A stretch of 63,080 nt of DNA, filler included, from Intoshia linei (taxonomy: Eukaryota; Animalia; Orthonectida): the NCBI GenBank assembly GCA_001642005.1. It is 7 parts of 7 records of this genome, joined end to end, with 100 filler letters (N's around TTAATTAATTAA, not from the genome) between each part and the next. Parts side by side here need not be neighbours in the genome. Positions count along the whole stretch, not along the records: positions 1 to 15,316 come from LWCA01000914.1; 6 more parts are not named here. The stretch is one strand, 5' to 3'. The notes beneath the pieces were generated by a model that worked only from the letters and a program-made list of their open reading frames with translations, ran no database searches and had not been told where the DNA came from. The position numbers were made by a program, and so were the translations under genes. Below, in pieces: positions 1,566 through 21,401 of the stretch (the stretch's first letter is position 1; the number at the start of each line of letters is the position of its first letter).

Positions 1566-4500
1566 ATGCGTTTCTCCCAATTTATAGTTATCGTATTGGT
1601 GGTTACTTTTTACGGTATGTTTACCTTTTAAATTTTTTAAATAGTGTTTGTATTTAAAGCGTTTAAATATTTTATAAATATAATTAAAATCGTTAAATAA
1701 CATTGAAATATAAATTTAAATTTTAAAATATATTTGTGACAATAAAGAGTTCCTGTGTACCAGGTCTGCTTTATTTGCTTATAGCGGTGTTTCTAAAAAT
1801 CTTTGCTGACGGCTTTTTGAAATTAAAATTTTGCAGTAATTCGAAAAATAAGAATTTACAGCAGTTTCATATTTTTTGATATTTCAATATTGCTAATGGA
1901 CATAAAATCCACCCTTAAATGGCCATAACTGTCAGTTGAAATTAAAAATGTTTCTTTTTATTAATCATTTAATTAGCTCAAAATGTTACAATTAACAACA
2001 ATACAAATACGTTAAATGCTACACACAGTGAGGTTCAACCGGGTAGTAGTAATAATACTTCAATAAAACCAATCGCTGCGAAAGGTATTTTAATTTATTT
2101 TTATTGTACAAAATAATGTTAAATATGGATTTATTATAATTATAATATCTATACATGTACTTTTTATGGTGTCATAATTTTACACTGCAATATAGTTGTA
2201 TATTTTAGTTCCATATATTGCTAGTAAGTTTACATTATGATAAAAATAGATCTGAACTCAAGATCTCGAATTATACCGCTATATAGAACGTTGAAATGAT
2301 TGAATTATAATATACTTGACTAAATTATAAAAATAGTTTGTAAATTAAATATTTTTATTTGTTAAAAAAATATTCTGTTCATAAAATTATAATTTCATTT
2401 AGTTTGTAATTTATTATTTAAAATATTGTTTAATTACAGATTAGTTTACAATTAAATCTTCATTAGTTGAGTTTTTCATTATCTTTTCAAAATGTTTAAA
2501 AATGTACATTATATATTATTCGTGCACCATTAATACATATATTAAAATTTCACGATAGATACTTCACCAAGACATTAATAATATAGCCTATTTTTCCTTA
2601 GTAAAGCTGCTAAAATTTAGAAAGTACCTGAGAAAAGGATGAAGTGAAATATACTATTTTATTTTTCGTATGATCATACGATATAATATTATAATACAAC
2701 GATTTGGGAAAACTATGGTGTGCGAGTCTTTTTTTTTTCTTTCACATATGATATTTTTATTCATTTTTGATTTTAATAAATAAAACCACAAATAAAGGTT
2801 GACGATTTAAAACATTTTAATCAATTTTTTTAAATTGTGACAGTAATGACTCAATATACTATTGTGATGTATAATCATTAAATATCTATTAACAGCTTGT
2901 AAATAAATTTTTTATTATTTATAATTAATTGGTATTAATTAATACATAATTTATAACTATTTTTTAATAATAATTACATTTTTTATGTTTAGTTGTTTCT
3001 AGTCATAAAAATATCTTTAAAATTCTTAGATGGTAACATACTCCTAGTATTTTAATTAGATTTTAGTAACCAATTTACATTATTATAAATTATTTAAATT
3101 TTAATCATTTTTATTTATAGTTAGTAATATTAATATAAATACATACTTTTTAAACCTTACGAAACAATTGCATGTATAGATGCCAAAAACTACACTCATA
3201 AATTTACCATAACTCATAATTATTACGCGACGTAATTGTAATTACGTGTCATAAATTAAATATATTTTATTGCTAATTCTAAGCCTAATTTAAGTTATTC
3301 ACTTTACAAATCAATGACATTTGAAATTTCTAAATTTTAAACTTTAAATTTTAATGTTTTTTAACATTTCAAAAGTAAAATTTTTTGCTTTCAATTTTGA
3401 AAATCAGCATAGTCTCGTAAAGGTTAATATTTGTATAATTTCAAATTTTAATTCAATAATAACGACTCAATGCACTGAGTAGTACAGTCTAAGTCCTTAT
3501 TAACGGAACTTGAAAATTACGTAATTCCGTTAATATGGAATTTCCCCCATAGTAAAACCGTTGTTAACAAAATTTAATTTTTTTAAATAAAAACCATTAA
3601 ATGGTCACATTTCTTGTTATTATGAGTTTTTGAATAATACATGACGAAGTAATATACACAAAAAATTATCAACGGGTACATGTGGACTCCTGGGCCCACA
3701 GCAGTTTTTGGGGTCCATGAAAAATTTTATAAATTTTAAAATTATTTACAGAAATAAAATAAGGTTGAAAATGATATTTCCGCAATGATAGTAATTATTT
3801 CTAATTAACGTCATCTAATTTAATATCTATTACAAATTTGATAAAAAATAGAATAAATTGACTTCTTAATAGTACCAAAATTAGTTTATATTTATGATAG
3901 TCATTAAAAATAGATTCTAGAGATATTTTTATTATCGGAATTTTTGGTTTATACAAATTCGTTAAAAAAAAATGAATAATTCAAAATTCCGTTAATAAGG
4001 AATTAGAACAGGGGTGCACAACCTTTCCATCAATTCAGCCGCAAAGTTACTTTAGTCATTGATTTATTGATTAGTCATTCACTACGGCCACACAAAATAT
4101 AATTTGACATTGAGAGAGTTTAAATCCAATTTGAGAAAGTGTTGAAAGTAACATTTTGATAAAAATATTTCCCTTGAATTTGATGTAAAATGATATATTG
4201 CATTATGATTACATGGATTGTCCACAGTCGCACATACACTCTATCACAGCCATATGCGTATGCATATGCCATCTAAGGTGGCAGGTTGTGTACCCCTGAC
4301 TTAGACTACTAAGTTTGTATACTATATTACATTTTCGGTATAAATTTTCAATACGATCTATTAATCTGATTATAATTATTATTATTATTGCATTATTAGC
4401 ATTCTATTATTATTATTATTATTATTAGATATTTTATATATCCAATTATAATACTTATGCGTTTCACTTTTATCTATATTTTGAGTATAGATTAATTATA

Positions 4501-7500
4501 TTAAGATGGTAAAAATAACAACATTTTTTACATACATATATTGTATACTACATCATGTATTTAATTGTATATTTTAAAAGGTTATAAAAAATAATTTTTC
4601 TACTTAGTTAGTAAAAATTTAATTAATATCAAACTCATTATATTTGGAATTTAAATCTCATAATTTTAACATATAATTAATCTTTATATTAATTGTTTTG
4701 GATGGATAGTCGGTAATTAAAAGTATTTTAAGATTTTCAATTATCTTCTAAAAATATTTAACTTCAAACTGGCAGATTCATTTGAAGTTTCAGTCAATAT
4801 AAATAATTGTAATAAGAAAACGTTTATTTTACTGTCTAATGCAGGGTGAACAACCTTTTCACCAATTCAGCCACAAAGCTCCTTTACTTATTGATAATAC
4901 CGACCGCACAAAATTTACTTTGATATTAAGAACGTCTAAATCCATTTAGAGAAAGTGATCTAAGTCAAAAATGTAACTTTTTGATAAAAATATTTTAAAT
5001 TGAACTTGAATAAAATCTTATTTAAACTTTTCCAATTTGACGTAAAATGGTCTATTTCATTGCACAATAAATCAACCAAAAAATTTAAATTAAGTCATTT
5101 TAATGAGTTTATAGATGCCAATATTTTAACATGCTGTAATAATTAAATTAATTACACACATAAATAATAATGTAAATTTTCTATCGTATGAAAAACTTGA
5201 ATCGGTCCAAAGAAATATTATAAACATAATAATGGCTGTACTTCTAAGTCACTTATATTCCCTTGTGATTGATAAAAATTTATTTTGCTGTATTGTTCGG
5301 AAACGTTTATTATGAATATACGATTTAAATAAACAAATATGTCATTTTCCAATTAATTTATATTAAATATTTGCAGAATGTAAATTTTTGATGGCTATTT
5401 ATTAACATGTAAATATAATAAAAATTGAATTTATCTGACTATTCAAAATGAATAATATATGATCATAGTTGGTAAATTAATGTTAATATTGTATACCTTT
5501 TAAGTAATTTGTCTATTTTGTACTATGTACAAAAATTAGATAAATCTGTAGAGAGCTAATCATAATTAATTATTAAAAAACAATGTAATTCAAATTCAAG
5601 AAAAATTATTGTATTCATTATATACATTGTAATTTACCTGTCGTCTGTCATCTGTGTTATGTATTTTTTGTTTTGAAAAATTTGCAATTTAATTAAAAAA
5701 ATAGATATTTTTGTAAATTTGTTGATTGTAAAATTGACTTGGTTTGTAAATCATTAACAATTTGGCAAATAATAATGTATATAACTTTATTGGCTCATTT
5801 AAAAATTGAAATGGATTCGATTAAAACTTACGAGGGAAAAATTCATTTGAACAGCAGGAAAAACTATCTAATTCTAGTAAAATGAGTATTTGTTAGCTTA
5901 GGTTTTTAAATAAATGATTACATACAAACATTCATTATTATATGTCAGGATAAGGTCCTTATTAATTTTATTTTATTGTAATTAATATTGTAGGGTTTAT
6001 TAATTTTGAAAACTGTCAATTTACTTTTTGTATGTCTTTTTGTTGGACTCCATTTTAATCCGAGACATTTCTTCATAAAATCGTCACTTTTCCTAGATTT
6101 TTCGGGAATTATGTTAATTAATTTTACCATTTTTATAGTGATTTAAGCTAGCACCTAAGCAAACATTTTAAAAGGTAGATTTAGGTTTTTTAACAATTTT
6201 TGTAAATAAAGAATTCAAAATTTTTACTATTTTGTTATTTTTTTGTGTGCAAATTTTTTCAATTGCTATCTAGTGCGATCTAATGGAAAAAATGTTGAGA
6301 AATATTAATTTAGATGTACATTATTATACTAATATGTATAGTTGGTAAATTTTTATACATATACAGAGTGTTAATTCTTCAAAAAATAAAATTATTATAA
6401 CAAACGAGATATAGTAGTTTTAATTGCAAATTAATATTTCTGTAGCACGTAAATTTCATTTTTAATTATGTTTTTGATATTTAGTTACAATGATAATGAT
6501 GAAGCATTATCGTGAATGATAAATTAATACATTTAATATATTTTTACAGTTGGTAATTTTTATACGGAAAACTTTTCAGAGTTTGTTTATTCAACATTGA
6601 TGATACTCAAAATTTTTTTGGAAAAATCAATTGTCCTGATTGAATGACTTTTCTATAGGCTTAATAAAATATATTTGATTATACTGTTGATAAACAAATT
6701 AACTTGATGTTGTTTATAAACACTACGTACGAGATATTATATTATAATAATAATAATTATTATTATTATTATCGATATTGTAAATAATAAATAAATAATA
6801 TCTAAAAGCTAAATGTTTAAATTATGTACGCACCAATATGTTCCTAATATTTATAGTGAGTAAGTATCATTAACGATAAAACTATGAGTACTTAGATATG
6901 TATAATTATGTTAAACTTTAACTATATAATTTAGTGAGTAAATATAATATTATGCATTAAATATACAAAGTTTTATCCATTAATTTTGATAAAATAATAT
7001 TTACAGTCTTGCATTAGAGGGATTAGCATCTCAGATATACAGGGGAAAAATTATTTCTTACGTTATTAAATCATTATTCAACAATATGTAATTTTAGCCG
7101 GTAAAGTTTAAAAAAATTATGTACCTAAGTTAACAATACAATTTTTTATTCTATGAGCTTTCACTAAATGTAATCATTTTTTAATATATACTTATATAGG
7201 ATGTAAAATATATTTATACCATACAATCTAGTAAAGAGGTTCATAAACTCATTTTGTCTACCTCCCCCTTTTTAGCAATATATTTTGCAAATCAACGGCC
7301 CTTTAAAAACGTTTTTCTATTGTGAGTGTTAATTGTGATCATCACTTGACTAAAAAAGTTATAACTTACGTTTTAGGGTCGTTCATTTGATGTTTAAATT
7401 TAAACTGTCTGATAACATTTAAAATTTAACTTTTGTTTTTTATTTATGTCTAAAAATATTGAAAATCTTTTTACATTGGAAACTTTTAATTTATTTATTT

Positions 7501-10500
7501 AAATTAATTGAATAATGTCATTTAATATTTATTTGGTTATAGCTGGTATGATTTTATTCCATTTGCCTTAAACTTTTAATAATTTTATAATTAACCTATA
7601 ATTTGAATGTTTAGGATGTAAACTTTTAAATGGCATTTATTTAAATACCGTGGAGCCTTGCTATTCGTCATTTCCGTATTTTGCTAAAAAACTTCCGTTC
7701 CAGCAAAAAATTGTTCAAAATAAAAAAATGAAGTTTCTCAAACTATAAAATTAATTGTATTTGAGCCATTCTCTAGCAAATAAAATATAAATATTTCAAT
7801 TTAAGTGACCTACAGGAAATAATATTCAAGACTCATACTCATGGATAAACTTAAAATCCGCGTATGACAGTGTTCAACATGGTTATTTTCTATATTTTAC
7901 ATATAAGTAAATACTAAAACGTAAATTTACAGTTAAAAACCGTTACGGCATTACGCGCAAAAAATATAATAAAATTTTAAGATCTGTTTTTTGATGATTC
8001 TTGTGAATATTTGATTAATTAAGGTTTTGTAATTGATTGAATAGTGAGATAAGAACATAGTTAACAGACATTTCCGAAATTCAATAAGATATATTCTTCT
8101 AATTAGACTATAAATTTGATTCAAAACGCATAAAATGTTACGGTGTTACAAAATGAACTTATTATTTCTGTTATACATTTATGGTATTAATAAATTGTAA
8201 ATTATAACCACAAAACAGCGCTTCACCTCTATGTTCTGATAAATTAACACTTTAATTACAATTAATATAAATATAACTATATAATTTCAATTAACACAAA
8301 TAATTAGATATTTGAATAATTTACTCATGTTTTTAAATTCTAATCGCATCATGTTTACGCATATTCGATAGAGTTTAATTTTCTGATTATTACCTTGTAC
8401 TGTGATTACTTTTTTAGTCAACATTGGCGTAATTATGATGCATTCCTTTTGATAATATATTTTAAAATATAGTATATTTTATTTTTTTATGTCATAATAT
8501 CTTAATAGAGCCTTAATATTAAATTTTCTATAATAATTTTGTAATATCCTGAAAATATATGAATCAAACTAACAAACAACGTAAAAATAAATATGATATC
8601 ATATAATTTAAATTTATCGTTTTTTTTAATTTATGACAGAGAATGGCTCATTTAGTTATGTAAAAAATATAAATACCATGTCGAATAGGAGTATTTACTG
8701 TAGTTAAAATATAAGAAAAATGGAATTATTTCAAATTAATTTAATTGAAATGTTTCATTAATTATACATGTTAATTATATTATTGTATATATTTTATTGT
8801 TAATAACATATTTTTCATAGTATGTAATGTTTTTATTTGATAGTTTTACTGTCATAAATTGTGATACAGAGATATTATTTTTTCTAACGTGTAGTAATGA
8901 AGATGGATACGTTAGTGATAATGACGTTATTATTGATATTATACATGTATTATTACATATATTATCTCTATTGATAAAGTAATGTTTCCAACCAATTTAA
9001 AATCATTTTTAACATTTTAATTAGAATGTTCATGAATATTCAAAAATGGTCATAGAACATTTTTTCAAAATTGGATTAAATGATTAATTAGTTGTAAACG
9101 TGTTTCTATTAGTTATATTATATTTATATTAATATATTTTATTAAACAGTTCGTAATTTTCATTAAAAATATAAAAGATACAAGAAAAAAGATAAAATAT
9201 GCCATTTCACATTCTTGAAATAATGTATTACATGTACACTAGGGTTATTATATTTTGATTAATTTTTGAAATTTTAAAATGAGGTATAAAGAAATGAGCC
9301 TTGATTAATTTGCTTCAAAATGATATGAATATTTTCGTTTTTGGTCTATATATAAAATACGTTCATGTTCAATTAATAATGGTTATTGTACTTTAGTTGG
9401 TATATTAAATAAATTAAAAATGTATGTAAAACAAGTTGTACTAACAATAAAAACAACGCGCCAGGAATCGTTAATTAATGTGCTAATACAGGATAATTTA
9501 TCAACTGAATTATGCCCAGTATCGAGCATAGGCACAAATAATTTCCAAAAATTTTATTCAATAATATTACAAAGATACGGAATCTTTTAAATGTAATAAA
9601 TTAGGACTCCTAATGGATAGAAATACTGATTCCTGCGTTATAGTATTTAAATTGTTTAAAATGATAAATTTTCTAGGCTGTAATTAAATATAAATTAATA
9701 TACAAAAGTTTACAATATCATTTATATTAAAATAAGTATTTATTATACATACATGTGTCACATATGTTTGTGACATTAAGGTGTTAACTTTTTTCTAAGA
9801 ACATAAATACAGGGTCATACAGGATGAGAAAAAAAATCTAAGAAAGGTGATAGTAATTTTGAATTAAGAATCATTTCTATATATAAATCACTAAGGAATA
9901 TGATAAAAAAGTTAAATTTTTTAATTTCACTGTTAGATTCAATTAACACAGGTCAAGATGTATGTAAATATTTATAATAACTATGCAACTGTATAAAATA
10001 AGTAAAAATTCATCATTTTTGGATATATTTTTAAAAGGTGGTTTTATCATTCATATGTGGATAAATTCAAAAATCAAACACATAATTCTTATTTATTTTG
10101 AGAATAATACGAACGTATGCTAATCGTCATGCAAAATGTTATTATAAAAAAATGTACATTGTACATTTTATGCAACTGAATTTAAATTTAATATTCCATT
10201 TATAGCAAATAGTAATATATAAACTTAATAAATTAATGACTTTATTGTTTAATATCAATTATAAAATATATAATTATAATGTATATTTTAATTTATTTAT
10301 GAAAGATTTATAAATTAAATAATTAAATTTATCCAAATCTATTAGTCAGTAAATTAATTTTATATTTAATGTATTTTTTGCAATAAAAATGATAATACAT
10401 GATGTATATTAAGACATTACACATAATATATTTAGTTAGTAAAAATATATGAATTAATTAATAAAAAATTTCACATACGATTAAAATTTACTACAGGGTG

Positions 10501-13500
10501 TTCATTAGGGGTATTCCAATTTGTAATTTTTTTGAAATTTAGAAGACATATATAGCTAATAATCTTAATTTAATTTGCTGCAGAATAATATAAACGAATC
10601 ACTGAAATCTAGTGAATGTTTCGATTCAGCTGATTATATACCATTAGTGCTTCCGGTTACTTGTAATCTTAGTTGTCTGAAATTTTGTTGAAAATCACAT
10701 TGGAATACAAAATCACCCGTACAAACCTAATCATGCAAAATTATAATAATCTTTCTATTTTTAGCGAATTTATAGGACATTTTGATAAAAATTTAAAACA
10801 AATTATTTGAGAATGTCTGCATTATTCGATACTATAAATATTTAATTTTTTTATCAATTACATTGTACAATTGTAATTTATTCATTTGTAGAAGGTAAAT
10901 CATTTTAAAAAAATCATATCTATTGTAATAATTATTAAATAAACTAATTAATATTATTAAGTTAATAATTACATCATGATAACTTTCAAATATTAATTAT
11001 ATATTTTGAATATTCCCTCAAGATGGTAATTTAATAATACCAAGAAGATTTATATGCAGTCAAAGTTGTTTTTTACAGTTTTAACAAATTTTATTTCCAT
11101 TACAATTGCATTCAACCTGTAGTTGGTAAATTCGATTTTATTAATATATTTACATACATAATAATATAATATAAATACTTAATTTACAAATGATTCAACC
11201 TAGGACGTAAATTATAAAAATTTTAATTATAATTGTCCGGATATTAACGGTCAAGGGAGAACTTCCCTCTGTTATACATCTAATTATTAATGTATATAAA
11301 ATATGTAGTTAGTAAATATTTAATAATTTTATAATATTTTTATAATTGTAATAAATGAACATTGTTTTATTGTTTAAAATATTTTATTTTAATTAAATAG
11401 TGAGTAATTAGAAATATTTTATAAAAATACAAATCAAATTATTAAACAACTATCATTTTAGTATGTATTGCATTATTATATTAAATATATAATAATAAAC
11501 ATTTTTAAACATAATAATTCAAATGATTAATCAAACGTTAATATATTTAATGCACGAATTATGTACATTGAAGCTCTACTAATGATGTTTCAAAAGTATT
11601 AAGAAAGCTAAAATTATAGCCTACATTGAAAATTTGACTACATTTTGTAATAAGACCCTCAACCGAGAAAAAGAAATTAACAATATAACTACGTTTATTA
11701 TTAATAAATAATATTTATGTTTTATTATCAATTTAAATATATATATATATATAATAGCTCGTAATTTTAATATTAACTTTAATAAAATATATATAAATTT
11801 GATGGGTTTTAGACAGAGCTGGCTGACATGCTAGTACCATCAGTAGTACCAGCTGATGACAGCTGTCTACCAGCAATATAATATTTTTAAAAAAAAATTT
11901 AACATTTTTTGAGCGATGTATTAATTTCACATGATAATTATAAATAAATTTTCTCATTGCCTGTACTTTACTTGACCAATGGAAAATTGTAACTAGTAAT
12001 TTAAATAACTATTACTATTTTGTCTCGCATGCAGAGCCGTTATAAGGCATGGACAATATGGGCTGTAGCCCGGAGTCACTCATTAAAAAAGGCCCTAATT
12101 AATAAAAGTACTTTACATTTTTATCTTAAAATTTTTTGTTACTGCATGGTGCATATTTCAAATGAAAAAGTAAACTTTGTTTATTAGTTAGGTAAGTTTT
12201 TGTATAAGAAATAAAATTTATTAAAAACCTACGTAATATCTTTTAATGCTTTTATTAATACTCAATAAAATAAGACTCTAAGTCTCCAACCAACAGTATG
12301 CCCTGTCTTCTAAAAAGGGGCCCTAAATTTTTTTATCGCTTCGCTCGAAATGGTTTTATGCTTCGCCCAGAGGCACGAAGTGGCTTAAGATGACTCTGCT
12401 CGCATGTCCACTCTCCTTATTTTATCGCAATCTTACGTTAAAATTGTAGATAGAGTATATCTTCTCGAATAAATTATCAAATCATCACAATACACGGTCA
12501 ACGATGTTTTTCTAAAATTACTTTACGCTAACCTTTAATTTACAATACTAAATAAGTTTTAAACTTGTAATTTAAAAAATCTTAACATTTCGATTTCATA
12601 TACCGTCAAACCTATGATTTTCCTAATTAATTTTTATTTACAAATAATAAATTTCTAAATGTTAATAAAATTACTAATTTTTCAATTCATAATAGTATTT
12701 TTATTATTTGCGATCAGCTGTATTGATATATTGTATTCAATAAAGCTAGTGCAATCCATGGTTTTAGATAATAACTATTCAATTTTTTTAGTGCGTAAAT
12801 TTTTGTTATGTTTTTAATTTTACTTTCAAATACGTTATTATACAAATGAATATTAAAGTAATTGGTGTTATATTTATTAATATATTTTTTAAACACATGT
12901 ATACTGTAATAAAACTGTTTATATTAAACTGGTATATTTAAACACTGTTCATTTGTACAATTACTTTCACTCTTAAAGTGTATTTTCATATTAAATTCTG
13001 ATAAACCCTCTTTATATCTTAATCAATATTACATATACATAAATATTTTTAGTGTGTAAATATATATTATGATTTATAAATAATAAATATTAACAGAGTA
13101 AATATTGTAAATATTATACTCATTGTGTTACATAATGTATTTCAGTAATTTTTAAATTTTAGTGAGTATATTATATATGAATTATTAATAATATTTTTGT
13201 ATTACATATTTTAAATATGTTGAAAATTATATTAAATATATTAGTGGGTATAAAATATGTATCAATAATAATAATACATTTATTATGTATTAAACCATTT
13301 ATATTAGTAATATAATATTACTAATATACGCATTTAAATTATACAATATTTTCTATTATTAATAATATATCATAAAGTCCGTAATGTTCCATTTTCAATT
13401 TAAAAAAATTAGTGATATTGTATTATAATAATAATAAAATATCAAATTTATTTTTAATATTAAATAGCAAGTAAATAATACATGCAAATAATTTTGTATT

Positions 13501-14480
13501 ATTTATATCATGTATATATTATATATAGTGTACATCAGGGATCGGAAACCAGTTGCCCGCGGGCCAACAGAATAATTTTAGTGATCCTTTGAGTAAATAT
13601 TTTAACTATTTATTTTTAAATTTTTCAACTTTAAAACATCGTTTTAAACAATTTCTGCTATAATTAGCTGATTATAATTATTTTAATACTGAATTTTCAG
13701 ATCGTCCCGAATTTTATTTTGTTGAATATACTAGATATCCTCTTCTGTTCAATTGAAATCTATCATGTGTAAATTTTCAAAAATAGGCCCATATAATTTT
13801 TTGATATAAAAAAGTGGTAAACAAGATGAAAAAGGTTCCCGAGCCCTGGTGTACAGTGTACGACATTTAATAATCATTGTGTAACCAATTACCTGTCATG
13901 TGTATCTGATTCATTATAATGGATTATAAATGATATGATTTAAAGTCAAAATAGTTTCGATAAATTAAATGTAATTTTCATAAAGTAAAATTTACATTAT
14001 AATGATTCACCCAAAAAATAAATAACTCAACATTGTATTACTATTTGGATATGTAGGAAGTTATTATGATTATAATTATAATGGATTATGAAATAAAAGA
14101 AATATAAAAAAAAAATATATTTGAAATTTTAGTAATTAAATATTTATCTAATATTATAAATTTAAATTCTGAATTTCATAAAAAAATGCAGCAAGAGAAT
14201 CACTCGAAAACTAAATTTGTAGTTAAAATATTAATTATTGGTGTACCCCTAAAAATTAATAAAATGGCCCCAATTGGTTAGTTTATTTATATTTATCGAC
14301 ATAAATATGTATGATATAAATATGCATTTCAATTTACTAGTTTGTAATTCATTTTTTTTATTTATTATGTTGATTTTATTTTTTTAATCGTACTATTCTA
14401 TAAATTTTATGAAATTTATGTTAGCGAGTAAATTACTATTTTCAAATTACTAAAAATATTAAATATATTTTATATAGTTT
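1566..14480 (+). CDS. Candidate micro-exon gene: signal-peptide-like exon, 15-nt exon and about 42 three-nucleotide exons; small hydrophobic protein; 3' end not seen
   Basis: Exon 1 is 1566-1614 (MRFSQFIVIVLVVTFY+G, donor gtatgt). Exon 2 is 2209-2223 (ttttag|...|gtaagt). A dense + strand series of AG|NNN|GTA units runs from 2337 to 14480. Concatenated in phase 1, they contain no stop codon. Confidence 0.65.
3485..4308. mobile_element. pogo/Tigger-like non-autonomous TIR element
   Basis: Left end TA|cagtctaagtccttattaacggaa. Right TIR ttccgttaataagg..acttagact, split by a hAT insertion. Confidence 0.7.
4009..4298. mobile_element. hAT (Charlie/Buster-like) MITE nested in the right TIR of the pogo-like element
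   Basis: TIRs caggggtgcacaacc / ggttgtgtacccctg. Degenerate 8-bp TSD aattagaa/acttagac. A truncated related copy starts at 4842. Confidence 0.8.
12032..12398. mobile_element. hAT-type MITE
   Basis: TIRs cagagccgttataag / cttaagatgactctg. Perfect 8-bp TSD ctcgcatg at 12024-12031 and 12399-12406. Confidence 0.85.
13536..13848. mobile_element. hAT-type MITE
   Basis: TIRs cagggatcggaaacc / ggttcccgagccctg. TSD gtgtacat/gtgtacag (7/8 match). Confidence 0.8.
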
Positions 14481-14517: not shown

Positions 14518-15316
14518 CACTACGTTCCAAATTATTAGGTAAGTGTTGAAATGTGGCATTTCACTGCTTTAAAACTGTTAAAATTTAACAATTTTTTTTA
14601 CGTTAACTCGTAGACCTTGTGAAAGAACATCTTCGAAATTTCAGAAAAATAGTAAAATTATTTGACGAGTTTTTAAAATATATTGGTTTTTGACCGTTCC
14701 AAATTATTAGGTAAGTTATACAATTGATCACTTTAACTTATTAATTGTTCTTGAAAAACATAAATATTTATCACAAAATAACATTTAATGTTATATAATT
14801 AAATTAAATTAAACTAATTAAACAAACAACACTATAAAAAAAGAAATATATTATTTAGTAATTGATGTAGTCACCTTGGTTTTCTACGATCTTCAGAAAT
14901 CTATTGTCCATTGACCCGGTCAACATTTTTATTTGTACTGGGTTAATGGACTTTGCAGCATCTACAATTACACACCCCAGGTCATTTGCGCTGGAATACT
15001 GAGTGTTGTTTGAATATACTACTCTTTTTATGATTGACCACATATTTTCAATGCAGTTGAGATCAGGGGACAAAGCCGGCCAAACCATTAATTTTTCGTT
15101 TTTGAAATGCTTTGATGCTAGAACCGATTTGGTATCATTAGCTGAGTGACATGGTGCATTGTCTTGCATAAAAACTAGACCCCTTTTGAACTTTTGTGTC
15201 TGTCGAGAATACCATGGAAAGAAATTGTCATTTAAAAACTGGATATACGTGAAACTATCGACTCTAGCCCCTGCAGTGTGTCTAAATGGTCCAACAAGCT
15301 TATCACCTACAATTGC
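14518..15316 (-). mobile_element. Tc1-like transposon, 3' part with DDE transposase C-terminus (runs into gap)
   Basis: ORF 14855..15169(-) contains QDNAPCH and WPALSPDLNCIENMW motifs. Terminus TA|CACTACGTTCCAAATTATTAGGTAAGT, with an inner direct repeat at 14695-14716. Confidence 0.92.
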
Positions 15317-15416: not shown

Positions 15417-16699
15417 ATCTTTCATCTTCATCATTTAATTTTTTGGTTTTATCATGTAAATCCATAATTTAATTAAATGTTGGCTCAGTATTTTTTACAT
15501 TTTTTCTATCGTTTTTATTTCTGTTTATGAATTTTTGATAATTTTTTATAACTGAACGAACTTTCAATNTTTTTGATAATTTTTTATAACTGAACTAACT
15601 TTCAATTTAACAAAAGATAAATTAATTGATTTCAAACTAAATTTTAACTATAATGAATGTAATTCGCACGCTACATAATCTGATATTTTAATAGTTAAGA
15701 TAGTATATTGATTTTGTAGATAATGATACCGTTATATATGAATCCAATAATGACTCTATTTTGCGGTAAGCGAGACAAGTCGGTCAAGCATTTGTCAGTT
15801 GTCATTCCATATGATTTACTTCTACATTTATTAAGTCTATTAAAATTAACTTTTTCTCTATTCATTAGCTTATATAATAATAATAAATCCAATTTATTAA
15901 GAAACGTGTAGTATTCAAGATACAATTGGTTTTGTTATATAGATNCCATATGATTTACATCAACATTTATTAAGTCTATTCAAATTAACTTTTTCTCTAT
16001 TCATTAGCTTATATAATAATACTAAATCCAATTTATTAAGAAACGTGTAGTATTCAAGATACAATTTGTGTTGTTATATAGATAGTTTAGTTTACTACTT
16101 ATTGAAATAAGGATTAATTCACAATTAAAATGTACAACATTACAAATGTATACGTTTTAATAATAATTATAAAAATAGTATTTCAAATAACTTTAACGTT
16201 ATATTAATTTATATTTAAATATGTACGGGTCCCCGCCTGAGCAAATGTTAATATCATGGTCTATATATTTTTATATACCATCCTTGAGGTAAATAGGAAA
16301 CATTGGCAAGGTATACTTTTTCTATAAAAAAAAGTTGGACACCCTAATTTCTATTACAGTTTTTTCCGGGTATTGGTAACATAAATTTCAACTTCTCATC
16401 TTACAGGTCAAAAAACCTATTTATCCTTTTTTTTTGAAAACCAAACAAGTTCGAGAATTTAAAAAAATATACACTGTGATACGGATTTTATAATCATATA
16501 TTTAAATTTAAAAAAAATATATCTTCATAGCCAAAACCACAAATTACCATTTTTTTAATCAAAACAGCCTTTAAATTTAAAAAAAATTACAGGTGGTACA
16601 GTTGTACCCTGTTAATATATATTATCAACTAATATTTTTTAAATATTAGTTGATAATAAAAATTGACAATATAAATATTGATCCTACAATACCAAAAAA

Positions 16700-17602
16700 A
16701 TGTGCATTCAACGTTTACTCATTTCCAATAAAAAAATATGGGTGAAAATCTATATAATTCATTCCTTCGCAATTTTTAAATCTCAAATTCTCACTATCAA
16801 AACATTTTGTTTAAAATTTAAATTAAAACTACAACAACAAATTACTAAAAGTAATACAACTTTGTTATTATAATTTTTATATTTATTACAATCCTTTGCA
16901 ATATTGGTAAAATTCCCTGCAAAATATGTTTATAAAGTGCTAATTCAGTTAATCATTGATATTTTTAAGTATTTATTAAATTGGAACTGAATATATATTA
17001 TCACATTGATAATGACAAAATAGGTTTTTATAATTTTATTTTTTTTGGAATTTATGCTATTTATACAAAATTTTTAATGAGTGTTTTTACTTTATTGTTA
17101 AGATTATACAACTCATTCTGTCTAATAAATTATTTCTTTAATTTTATTTTTTCTGGAATTTATGCTATTTATGACAATTTTTAGGATTGGACATTTTTAC
17201 TTTTTTTTAATATTATACACACATTCTGTCTAAAAAATTAAAAAATGGGATAAAAATTGTTTTTAAAATTTTTCACATTAATATTAACAAAAAAAATTAA
17301 GATGAAATAATTCACTTTAAAGTAAAATGTAATGTGATATGACAGTTCCAGCTGAAAAAAAGTTTGAGAACCACTCCTTTAAAGGATTGATAATAGTGAA
17401 TAGTAGGATTTTTAAGTTAGATGTAAATTTATTTTTTGGTAGTATAAAAATGTTCCCTCGGTAGAACTAGGCTACGGGGATTGATAATAGTGAATAGTAG
17501 AATTTTTAAGTTAGATTTTCAACGTGAATTTTCACGTATAATAAAAATGTGCTCTCGGCAGAGATAGATGCGTTTGTACGTAGTACATAACAGTCAACCT
17601 GG
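16700..17602 (+). mobile_element. Non-autonomous Helitron-like family copy
   Basis: Ends in the hairpin tgtac-gta-gtaca, 11 nt, then CTGG. The body is shared with copies at 19314, 24387, 39350, 45746, 49213 and 54264-55607. The left boundary is approximate. Confidence 0.7.
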
Positions 17603-19313
17603 CATTTTATATTACTTGTTGTGTGAAATTTTTTCTAGGTAAAAATTCAATAGGACCAGAGCAGTGGCTTAGATATATACTATAAATCTTCACGTCGTAA
17701 CTAAATTTTAACAATTAAAATTAACATGTATATAAGTACTGTAGCGCAATAACAAATTAAATTTTAAAAAAGGGCTTTCAAATGCGCATTGCGCATTTGA
17801 CGCGGACGTAAAATTTTTATATTTTAAAAATTTCTATAATGAATCTAATGTGATAAAAAGTAACAAATATTAAAATTTTAGCGGGTATTCTATTATAACT
17901 AACGATTATAAATAGCTATTTTACAATAGTCATTTTCTGTGGTATTTTTAATGAATTTAGACCAATTTTCAACTTTAAAAATGTATCTTAATATCCTTAT
18001 CAAGCTTAGTACATCAATGAAAAAAAATTATATTAAAAAAACTGGAAAAAGTTATGATTTATCAATGATCGTATTTAATCATCGGGTGAAATGATCCATA
18101 ACTATATATATGCAGATAAGGAAAAAATATGAATTATACATATAAAAATAATTAAATCCTCAACCATACCTTCAAATTCACTTTTATTAAATATTTATTA
18201 CATTACGCCACACTTATAATGACTTATATTATATTAGAGTTAGAATAGAATATTGTTAATTACCTATGTTTTTCGGCATTATATGTAAACATGGAAAGAC
18301 CTAAATAATATTATTTAAGTATTCACTCTTTTACCGGCATTACATTTGACAAAGTATACATTTCTTACAACCATGAATAATACTAAAAATCAATACCATT
18401 TACACTGTCATTCTAACAGGCGTGTCACAACTGTTTAAAATTAGCTTGTATTTATAGCGTCAGTATTTTAAATAGTTTGTCAGTATAAATATAAGTATAA
18501 AGTAATAGTATAAGTATAAATAAAAGTAAAATATAAATAATTTATTGTCAGTATTTAAATTGGAATGGCAGTACAAAAAATTACTTTGTCAGAACTTTAA
18601 ATATACTGTCAGTATATACTGACACATATGTAATTGAATACTGACATTTTAATATTTATACTGACAATTTTTGTTGAAAATACTGAAAATTTTTTATTAA
18701 AATCCTGACAGTTTCGGTAATTAAATACTGACAAATGAAATACTGGCCTTTAAAATTTAATATACACTTGTACTATTTTTTATACCTGTGTATTAAACAA
18801 AAACTGCACAAATTTCTTATTAATTCAAAATTTATCAAAAAATTACACAATTACTGTTCAAAAAGAAACGACTTCATAACAAATTGTTCAAAAACTAATT
18901 TTTTTCATTATAATAACATAATGAAGTTTTATCAAAAATTTGTTAATTGAAAAATGAGTCAAAAAACAAGTGAAACTATTCAGAAAGCACCGACTTTGAC
19001 TAACAATCCTAAACTAACGTAGTAGAATTTTCACGATCATATGAGCCAATATGTCTCAATAGGGCCATGTGGCCTATTTTTGGTAAAAATTTTTTATTTT
19101 GTAGATTTTGCAGAATTATCTTAGAATATTCCAATTTTCCTTCATTTTTATGAAAATTTAATTAACTTTTCAGGTAATTAATTATTTCAAATTTTTTGTT
19201 AATAAAATAGTTTAAAAATAAAAAAAAATTGATATTAAAGTGCATTTTTGACTGTGAAATCATCACTTTTCTAGATTGAAATTTTTTCTATGTGTTAACA
19301 GAATATAAATGTA

Positions 19314-19560
19314 CTAGGTTGACTGTTATGTACTACGTACAAACAGGACCTAGCTTTGCCGAGGGCACATTTTTATTATACCAAAAAAATAAATTAACGT
19401 TGAAAATCTAACCTAAAAATCCTACTATTCACTACTATCAATCCTTTAAAGAAGTGGTTCCCAAATTTGTTTCAGCTGGAACCGTCATATCACATTACAT
19501 TTTATCTTGAAGTGAATTATTCCATCTTAATTTTTTGTTTGTTATCATCTGTAAAATTTT
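19314..19560 (-). mobile_element. Helitron-like family copy (3' end)
   Basis: a|ctaggttgactgttatgtactacgtac is the reverse complement of hairpin + CTAG|T. Confidence 0.72.
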
Positions 19561-21401
19561 TATAAATTCTAGAGCTGTTTTCATTTTTAAAAACAGGGTA
19601 AATGATTTTGATCGTGAAATAATCGTTTTTGATGCTGCCATCTATGATAATGTTTGATGCGGACCATAACAAGCTTATCAATGTAAATTATAGATTTTCA
19701 TTAATAAATACCAATTTGAAAGAGTTCATTAGCATCACAAATTGTCTTAAAATCTTTGTAAATTTCAGAAATGTTGAGATGTTGATAAGATTTCATCGGA
19801 TCAAAGTTTGGTAAAGCACCGAATTCAGTATCGACAGCTATTTAAATTATAGTGTATAATGGTGTAAATGTTTAAATTTGACATATAAAATAGTTTATAG
19901 TCAAAAAAATTAAGTTTGTTATAATGTTAGGCTCGAAAACATAAGGCTCCAATTTTACAAAAATTTCGTCGAGGCCAAAAAGGGGTTTCGTTATTATAGG
20001 CTATGTATATTGTACAATGTACACTTTTATACTAAGAATTCAAAAATCTAGGATTGAATGTCTGACAATGACAGAAATTAAAAAAAATAATAAATTATTT
20101 TCAGTAAATTTAATATCTTTGCGTTTTGCCATTAACGACGCAATGTCAAAGAAATGTTTTCATAAAATAAACACTAACTTTGTTGGTATTATATTTTCAA
20201 ATCTATTTGAAATTGGGTCATAATTTTATACATATATTTTAATCACTGGAGTTAATCAATTAAGGGAGGAACAAAATATTTGATGCAATGTTTGTGGTAA
20301 GTATAAAATACAACAATGTGTTAATTTACAATTTTATTTTTGTTGAGTGTATTTTTTGAGACAATTGATTAGTTTTCGTAATCTTTTTTGCATTGGGTGG
20401 ATTTTAAGTAATTGAAACTTTATAGCACTGTAGCCAATATTTAAATTTCAATGTTTATATATTTTGAATGAACTTACTGTTCATAGTTGTAGAATGAAAA
20501 ACTACAACTGTATGGCAAGAAACTGTTTTTTATGTATTCTAAAAACTTTGAAAAAATGGTACGCGAAATTTAAATTTCTGCTGTGTCTAAGTAAAATTGG
20601 AATCATGTCACTTACAAAATAATAATGTACCAAATTTTAAACTGCACAGTTTATTAATGTAATTAATTTTTTCCTGACACGAAATTTTTCATTTTGGAAA
20701 GACACATAATAATCAAATTAATGTAACACTACATGTATAAAAAAGATTTTAGAGTTAAACTTTACCGAATCATTTTAAAAATTGTGGATGTTTTTTGATT
20801 TTTAAATACCTTTTACACCGGTCCGGAAAATGTTGATCTGTTTATTGAAGAGTGTCTGGTGCCAAGACCAAGAATTAACAAAAAATTACCGATAAAGTCA
20901 CATTGTTTGGCATCACTGAGTAGTTCATCTTTATGTTGGGCAAAATTTTCTTTGGTCAAATAATTTACATACATTTTCGAATATCGATGTAAATTTTAAA
21001 TAAAGATCAATGTTCACGTAACGTATGGCATTGAGACATGGAAAAACGTGAATCTACAAAATTGTATATTGTTTTGTTTAAATAATGATTCATTATTGGT
21101 ATATTTTGTCATTGAAGTGAACGTGGATGATTATGTGTAAACAAGTTGTATTTACAATAATTTCCATTTTAAAAAATATGCAACTTTTAACTCTTTCTTT
21201 TAAATTTTATATCAACTAGATTGATTAAAATCCGTATCAGCGTATATATTTGTTTAAATTCTTTAACTCGTTTGATTTACAAAAAAAGACAATTGGGGTT
21301 TTTGACCGGTAAGGTGTGAGTTTAGTCGGTTGAAATATATCTTATTATCATCCGGAAAAAAACTGTAATTGAAATGTGGACTTTATAAAATTCTAAGACT
21401 A

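Follow-up and report, generated by a model that had tools for sequence, protein, structure and literature searches.

The window analysed here, i.e., the whole stretch of 63,080 nucleotides (nt, filler included) from the orthonectid Intoshia linei (assembly GCA_001642005.1), opens with a piece of 15,316 nt (LWCA01000914.1) which, between positions 1566 and 14480 of the + strand, probably carries the 5' part of a protein-coding gene with introns at almost every codon, a gene whose transcript would be spliced serially and whose product would be hydrophobic. An earlier note on this DNA had proposed at this place a micro-exon gene that gene finders cannot see, built of roughly one codon per exon. 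The first part of this proposal is supported by a reading frame that stays open, with no stop among 270 junction codons of 11 pooled loci, in the very phase that is set by two leading exons of 49 and 15 nt. The second part had to be corrected, as every intron lies in phase 1 and the codons are split 1+2 between neighbouring exons.

A strand-specific array of triplet units

To count the units, we took the 15,316-nt piece that holds the gene and compared it with 200 dinucleotide-preserving shuffles. The motif AG-N3-GTA occurred 45 times on its + strand, compared with 8.4 ± 2.9 times in the shuffles and 9 times on the − strand, and YAG-N3-GTA occurred 40 times on the + strand compared with 4.4 ± 2.1 in the shuffles, in agreement with the hand estimate of about 4 chance matches given in the earlier note. 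Counting AG-N(k)-GTA on both strands gave the spike at k=3 which that note had anticipated, confined to the + strand; none of the other spacings from k=0 to k=30 was enriched in the piece, k=0 being found 8 times compared with 10.2 in the shuffles.

All 42 AG|NNN|GTA units listed in the earlier note were recovered at the same positions, 39 of them with YAG acceptors and 37 with GTAA donors, as it had described. Its caution that a few units may be chance hits was apt for those at 4506, 11023 and 13378, which have AAG acceptors, score 6.2, 3.3 and 2.8 bits in a splice-site matrix (compared with 9–17 bits for the other listed units) and may be false. Three further AG-N3-GTA matches (2621, 4314 and 6861) had rightly been left out of that list, having weak donors or acceptors, and the additional exons of 15, 12 and 6 nt that it had put forward scored high (12.1, 14.9 and 14.4 bits, respectively). 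A tandem or dispersed repeat origin of the array was ruled out by Tandem Repeats Finder (TRF), by repeat finding and by alignments of adjacent intervals, intron to intron, which bears out the earlier statement that the array is not a tandem repeat.

The scan for other such arrays that had been proposed in the same note was run on the I. linei assembly (41.6 Mb in 3,520 contigs). A two-unit pattern matched 106 times genome-wide compared with 40 for the control, and 107 times compared with 35 in a second spacing range, the matches clustering on particular contigs and on one strand of each. At least 25 contigs were found to carry similar, strand-specific arrays, which indicates a small gene family or class. 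Genome-wide, TAG-N3-GTAA exceeds the N2 and N4 spacings by a few hundred only, and so the arrays are confined to a small share of the genome, about 25 or more contigs. All 10 other contigs that we analysed had the same single-strand spike at k=3 as the window; contig C1697, for example, holds 88 units in 20 kb and C2698 holds 99 in 41.7 kb. These 10 contigs and the window make up a pooled sample of 11 array loci (180 kb), which takes C970, C1037, C1017 and C516 in part and leaves out the C2981/C3051 pair and some 14 further array contigs. In this sample, the units at k=3 numbered 453 compared with 38 on the opposite strand, and 420 compared with 13 at a splice-matrix score of 10 bits or more.

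Stop codons are avoided between immediate neighbours

Read as whole codons, the triplets contain 7% stops, and this reading was rejected. In phase 1, each codon is formed at a junction: one triplet supplies its third base, the following triplet adds its first two, and the two halves lie some 85 nt apart in the DNA. In our main junction test, adjacent units 30-130 nt apart were taken from the 11 pooled loci and their partners were permuted 2000 times. Not one of the 270 junction codons was a stop, compared with 12.7 ± 2.8 expected, and none of the 2000 permutations gave a count as low; when gaps of up to 200 nt were allowed, a single stop was found in 336 junction pairs across the 11 loci. The other two frames contained about 7% stops, as expected, and the chance units of the opposite strand, which served as a control, had 4 stops in 87 pairs. 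At lags 2, 3, 4 and 5, stops were found in 6 of 219, 6 of 146, 7 of 108 and 4 of 79 pairs, all at expectation, so that avoidance exists only between immediate neighbours and there is no sign of selection for products of exon skipping. A blind test of all 64 junction codons again singled out the stops: TAA was the most depleted codon (0 compared with 8.2 expected, z=−3.7) and TGA was absent as well (0 compared with 2.8), with no similar stop depletion in the control frame.

It thus appears that the triplets are spliced one after another and are translated in phase 1-1; since stops are avoided across consecutive triplets, they would stay in the translated product. For correlations between junction halves this far apart, we see no explanation other than selection on a spliced and translated product. 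The signature of stop avoidance at lag 1 only also allows such genes to be detected from genome sequence alone.

Among the pooled loci, at a matrix score of 10 bits or more, exon sizes of 6, 9 and 15 nt were likewise enriched over the opposite strand (43 compared with 20, 23 compared with 13 and 30 compared with 12, respectively), and none of the 43 six-nt candidates had an internal stop in the phase-1 frame. No enrichment was found there by the splice matrix for k=0, 1, 2, 4, 5, 7 or 8 (k=0: 22 compared with 18 on the opposite strand). Exon-exon joins created the donor-like GT[AT] only 6 times, compared with 17.1 ± 3.1 expected (P≤0.0002), and GT[CG] was not depleted. Such a pattern would be expected if cryptic donors were avoided while intermediates are only partly spliced, and it fits joins that are formed while downstream introns are still present.

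Some junction codons other than stops also deviated from the permutation expectation in the 11 loci, namely GCA (12 compared with 3.6), ACA (0 compared with 5.0) and CAA (8 compared with 3.1); such deviations could reflect a codon or amino-acid preference, or a constraint of splicing.

Gene model in the window

The model comprises 46 exons (exon 1, the 15-nt exon, 42 triplets, and one exon each of 12 and 6 nt) with 208 nt in all, i.e., 69 codons without a stop, spread over 12.9 kb (1566-14480, + strand). Exons of 15 nt or less hold 159 of the 208 known coding nt, and 3-nt exons hold 126. Exon 1 and the 15-nt exon set phase 1, the phase in which the arrays stay open, and because the codons straddle phase-1 introns, the four TGA triplets of the array are not stops. 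The frame also stays open when the doubtful units at 4506, 11023 and 13378 are dropped, and only 1 of 45 single-exon skips in the window creates a stop.

All exons lie on the + strand, and the splice-matrix score of each one after exon 1, in bits, is given in brackets after its coordinates. Exon 1 (1566-1614, 49 nt) opens with an ATG and ends in phase 1 before the donor GTATGT; it codes for MRFSQFIVIVLVVTFY, and its final base already belongs to the codon after that. Next come the 15-nt exon at 2209-2223 (12.1; TAG...GTAAGT, phase 1-1), which has no internal stop in phase 1, and then the triplets TTT at 2337-2339 (15.1), TTT at 2403-2405 (16.2), CTT at 2896-2898 (13.5), ATG at 3030-3032 (11.7) and TTA at 3121-3123 (15.4). 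The doubtful ATG at 4506-4508 (6.2; AAG acceptor), with or without which the frame is open, precedes TTA at 4608-4610 (15.3), TCG at 4710-4712 (9.9), AAT at 5377-5379 (15.7), TTG at 5469-5471 (14.1), TTG at 6342-6344 (15.5), CAC at 6446-6448 (14.4) and TTG at 6550-6552 (16.1). Two TGA triplets come next, at 6857-6859 (13.7), read as xxT/GA-x across the joins and hence not as a stop, and at 6935-6937 (16.2), and after them CCG at 7098-7100 (14.1), GAT at 7200-7202 (14.9) and CTG at 7543-7545 (9.1), the sole exon whose skipping makes a stop.

The array goes on with GAT at 7615-7617 (12.9), TAT at 8821-8823 (14.3), TTC at 9150-9152 (14.3), TTG at 9397-9399 (11.2) and GCT at 9677-9679 (13.1), and is then interrupted by the 12-nt exon at 9952-9963 (14.9; CAG...GTAAAT), which keeps the frame open, and by the 6-nt exon at 10206-10211 (14.4; TAG/CAAATA/GTAATA). 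Beyond these lie TCA at 10346-10348 (14.6), TTA at 10436-10438 (15.0), AAG at 10892-10894 (14.6), the doubtful ATG at 11023-11025 (3.3; AAG acceptor), optional for the frame, TTG at 11123-11125 (9.9), GAC at 11204-11206 (13.8), TTA at 11309-11311 (15.4), TGA at 11401-11403 (13.1), TAT at 11462-11464 (9.9) and CTC at 11758-11760 (15.8). The last part consists of TGC at 12792-12794 (17.2), TGT at 13053-13055 (15.6), TGA at 13163-13165 (14.7), TGG at 13245-13247 (12.3), the equally optional and doubtful TCC at 13378-13380 (2.8; AAG acceptor), CAA at 13468-13470 (15.1), TTT at 14341-14343 (13.1), CGA at 14425-14427 (13.0) and TTT at 14478-14480 (14.2), the last one seen, at which the chain is still without a stop.

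No stop has been reached by 14480, with the end of the contig at 15316, so that the gene probably extends past the contig. Each end of the piece carries a Tc1/mariner transposase remnant on the other strand from the gene: a helix-turn-helix (HTH) part at 38-280 (−), a weak Pfam match, and a DDE_3 part at 14858-15316 (−; E=1e-10). The latter reaches the end of the contig, and the 3' end of the gene is therefore missing. A similar pair, HTH_Tnp_Tc3_1 and DDE_3, is found on C2698, at 6722-8025 (−) of the analysed stretch.

Splice signals and introns

Ordinary I. linei introns, as found in the tubulin genes, are 35-41 nt long and of the form GTAA...TTTAG, and the published median intron of the species is 57 bp (PMC6543705). 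An alpha-tubulin exon of this assembly, itself intronless, has 100% identity to the protein entered as 'Tubulin alpha chain [Intoshia linei]'. The signals that flank the triplets match the tubulin-gene introns, which indicates that they are the animal's normal splice signals. Acceptors have T at −3 in 72% of the units and donors are GTAA in 78%; the flanks contain about 13% G+C, and the triplets are richer in G and C than these flanks, with G as the last base in 29%. The intervals between units have a median of 84 nt (interquartile range 72-102), normal to longish for introns of this animal; their tail is poor in G, and a branch-like yTAAy motif peaks 15-20 nt before the acceptor.

Adjacent introns were no more alike than control pairs (alignment scores of -0.079 compared with -0.085, P=0.28) and their lengths were uncorrelated, so that neither recent tandem duplication nor introner-type elements have left a trace; nor were terminal repeats or duplicated target sites found in the intervals between units. 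A search of the window against Rfam at E≤1 gave no match, and the introns therefore hold no known small nucleolar RNA, microRNA or tRNA.

Dispersed repeats were found in two introns of the gene: one of about 520 bp at 3484-4008 (no strand assigned), inside the long intron 3124-4505, has copies at 83-87% identity on several other contigs, and one of about 900 bp at 7745-8680 (no strand assigned), inside the long intron 7618-8820, recurs on other contigs in at least 30 copies, which are 80-89% identical and lie in either orientation. Since these two repeats fill the two longest gaps of the window, the long introns are those that took up transposons. The first of the two introns also contains an (ATT)n microsatellite of about 19 copies, at 4369-4427.

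Predicted product

The product of the window gene, known over 69 or more residues, is very hydrophobic (grand average of hydropathy (GRAVY) +1.57) and is predicted to be a secreted or membrane protein. Its exon 1 encodes M-R-F-S-Q followed by 11 mostly hydrophobic residues, a kind of start that is also likely by composition alone. Over all loci, the junction residues are protein-like in their make-up, with 11.6% I, 10.7% L, 9.5% A, 9.2% V and 5.4% D in DNA of 22% G+C. The second codon base is T in 63% and A in 9% of cases in the window, compared with 30-34% T and 44% A on C970 and C1697, at equal local base composition, and the heterogeneity of residue type between loci is significant (P=0.0014). 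That the type of residue differs between loci of equal base composition argues for selection on the residues themselves, beyond the avoidance of stops.

Array loci on other contigs

The array loci resemble one another in sequence only through interspersed repeats of 400-900 bp, which occur in both orientations, and in addition to the two repeats described above, further ones of 400-780 bp are common to array loci, again in both orientations. Exon 1 of the window is unique in the genome, and no allelic or paralogous copy of the window locus was found in the assembly, where only its repeats have matches. The arrays on C1017 and C2698 are likewise closely preceded by hydrophobic, ATG-started first exons that end in phase 1, each of 79 nt (MKSVTFFSGLLFVFIQLISY... 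and MFKILIALQFLSVIMA..., respectively). At the end of the C1697 array, candidate 3' terminal exons are ambiguous.

Several other features of these contigs were recorded. C2981:538-614 (+) and C3051:484-560 (−) share a near-identical two-unit segment, with few mismatches in 77 nt, and may be alleles or recent paralogues. The array locus on C1593 contains, at 7912-8358 of the analysed stretch, a direct duplication of 229 bp at 99.6% identity, which is either a tandem duplication of very recent date or an artefact of the assembly. On C2340, the array strand also carries an intronless open reading frame (ORF) of 724 amino acids (16318-18489, +), situated where the array units leave a gap of 4.7 kb. 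Both its N-terminus and a C-terminal segment are hydrophobic, and it contains a Cys-rich stretch as well as several S-x-D-x-G-x-x-W-like motifs; its resemblance to sortilin/VPS10-type receptors is by eye only, with searches of Pfam (E≤0.01) and of PDB sequences giving no match. Just downstream of the array end on C1697, an open frame of at least 372 amino acids runs on the opposite strand (18885-20000, −), as far as the limit of the analysed stretch, which cuts it, and without a Pfam match. No public gene calls were found for two ORFs of the array contigs.

A proposed gene assembled three bases at a time

We propose that the gene begins with exon 1, whose 49 nt would encode a hydrophobic, signal- or membrane-anchor-like N-terminus and end in phase 1, and continues with about 45 phase-1-1 exons, namely 39 to 42 triplets and three longer exons, of 6, 12 and 15 nt. 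The introns between them would follow the I. linei consensus GTAA...yTAAy...TTTAG with a median of about 84 nt, a few of them enlarged by transposon insertion, and would be recognised by intron definition, in a genome of short introns. Only 3 nt separate an acceptor from the donor that follows it, too few for both to be occupied at once, and neighbouring introns must therefore go one after another; splicing would thus be consecutive, as at recursive splice sites, each step leaving three bases in the mRNA and each codon being pieced together from one exon's final base and the two bases that open the exon after it.

A number of points weigh against this proposal. We infer the actual splicing and its order, the translation and the function of the product from sequence statistics, and we know of no experimental precedent for the serial processing of dozens of consecutive 3-nt exons. 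The putative signal peptide of exon 1 was judged by eye only. The window chain yielded neither a stop codon nor a 3' terminal exon, as the gene runs off the contig. Finally, the residues, when pooled, differ little in composition from what would be expected of AT-rich bases alone, and hydropathy autocorrelation within loci was not significant, in a test of low power.

These last observations also bear on an alternative that we consider unlikely, in which the units are spliced and in frame but the triplet peptide is not the functional part. In an animal whose introns are normally some 35-60 nt long, the sites would merely cut long phase-1 introns into spliceable pieces; selection would just forbid stops, so that nonsense-mediated decay is avoided and the frame kept, and the functional protein would come from conventional exons located past the contig end. 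Base use at codon positions 2 and 3, pooled over the loci, is indeed near background, the loci lack hydropathy autocorrelation, no 3' end was seen, long introns do hold transposon insertions, and the published median intron is short. Yet residue type varies by locus at equal base composition, T stands at codon position 2 in 63% of the window exons, and there is codon structure besides the stops, such as the excess of GCA. Zero-length ratchet sites would moreover divide introns at no cost to a protein, yet they are not enriched, and the arrays directly follow first exons.

It is still harder to see the units as spliced and non-coding, as parts of long non-coding or untranslated-region transcripts removed step by step in a recursive type of splicing, or of host transcripts whose functional products are the introns. 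Canonical splice signals, strand specificity and the normal share of stops among triplets read as whole codons are all compatible with such transcripts, and we nevertheless give them very little credence: the frame is open specifically in phase 1 at lag 1, which argues strongly against them, only multiples of three are enriched among exon sizes, and Rfam reveals no intronic RNA family. Least credible is an origin without any splicing, whether by chance, by an error of assembly or through a motif acting at the DNA level, such as a site bound by a protein or the target or end signature of a transposon. Dispersed repeats do abound in the loci, as such an origin might have it, but the excess of units is strictly strand-specific over tens of kb and the intervals lack shared similarity, terminal repeats and duplicated target sites; above all, a correlation that follows the genetic code across some 85 nt cannot arise at the DNA level, and this explanation is in effect refuted.

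As for the origin of the gene that we propose, an ancestral ORF may have gained introns, or AG-NNN-GT sites within long phase-1 introns may have been exonised step by step. A bolder version of the latter, which we put forward as tentative and rather doubtful, is that such proteins are built codon by codon and that the arrays have grown de novo, in a genome with a spliceosome that prefers very short introns, chance AG-NNN-GT sites inside long phase-1 introns being recruited singly, each shortening an intron and adding a residue.

Comparison with known systems and significance

Our literature search found no paper that links Intoshia or orthonectids with micro-exons. The I. linei arrays are best described as an extreme new variant of micro-exon genes (MEGs), which in schistosomes have 10-20 exons, mostly of 6-81 bp with a mode of 15 bp, and which resemble the arrays in being missed by ORF-based gene finders and in their small hydrophobic ('sticky') products (bioRxiv 10.1101/2023.06.21.545858). 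In both cases the organism, Schistosoma mansoni on one side, is a parasitic spiralian with a small family of several loci, a conventional first exon with a hydrophobic N-terminus precedes very short symmetric exons and much longer introns, most of the coding sequence resides in very short exons, and the micro-exons are symmetric, in multiples of three with equal phase on both sides, the phase in I. linei being 1. The label 'MEG-like' used in the earlier note stands for this architecture only. Unlike in schistosomes, about 88% of the I. linei exons are of 3 nt, a gene has at least 46 exons and a contig up to about 100 units, introns split almost every codon, and there is no sign of selected skip variants, stops at lags 2 to 5 occurring at normal rates. 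Orthonectida are close to annelids; the host lineage thus differs from that of schistosomes, making convergence likely. With parasite-specific genes, small products and a hydrophobic N-terminus on both sides, the parallel suggests that parasitic spiralians evolved micro-exon genes convergently.

Recursive splice sites, or ratchet points, reportedly occur in long Drosophila introns, e.g., those of Ubx. They share with the I. linei units a 3' splice site placed directly beside a 5' splice site, the two not being usable together, and the sequential removal of an intron. They differ in that a recursive site is a zero-length exon that leaves no trace in the mRNA, whereas I. linei would keep and translate three bases per step and shows no enrichment at k=0, and in that Drosophila ratchet introns span tens of kb compared with about 84 nt here.

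Single 3-nt microexons are known, the AAG exon of NCAM being one. Neuronal microexons that depend on SRRM4/eMIC are like the units described here in preserving the frame at sizes down to 3 nt and in using the major spliceosome; by the published definition, microexons measure 3-27 nt (PMC7935315). Unlike the presumably constitutive I. linei arrays of dozens, they are isolated cassettes of conventional genes with an upstream UGC enhancer, and this element is not enriched in I. linei, TGC being present within 30 nt upstream of 6.7% of units compared with 8.6% of control intron segments. Introners, as found in Micromonas, Aureococcus and dinoflagellates, are transposon-generated introns with a common sequence, terminal repeats and target-site duplications. 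They produce similar local bursts of very high intron density, whereas the introns of the I. linei arrays lack mutual similarity and length correlation.

If RNA confirms the proposed structure, these would be the most finely fragmented genes so far described, with 40 to 100 consecutive 3-nt exons, and the spliceosome would be able to assemble an ORF three bases at a time, which bears on the minimum size of an exon and on intron versus exon definition. Should the arrays have grown de novo, their coding sequence would be born from introns, a new route of gene growth leading, through serial recursive splicing that deposits bases at each step, to the densest packing of introns known, at one intron per codon. 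Given the same confirmation, they would also form a class of genes invisible to annotation based on ORFs or homology and to standard RNA-seq aligners, and compact parasite genomes may hide more such genes.

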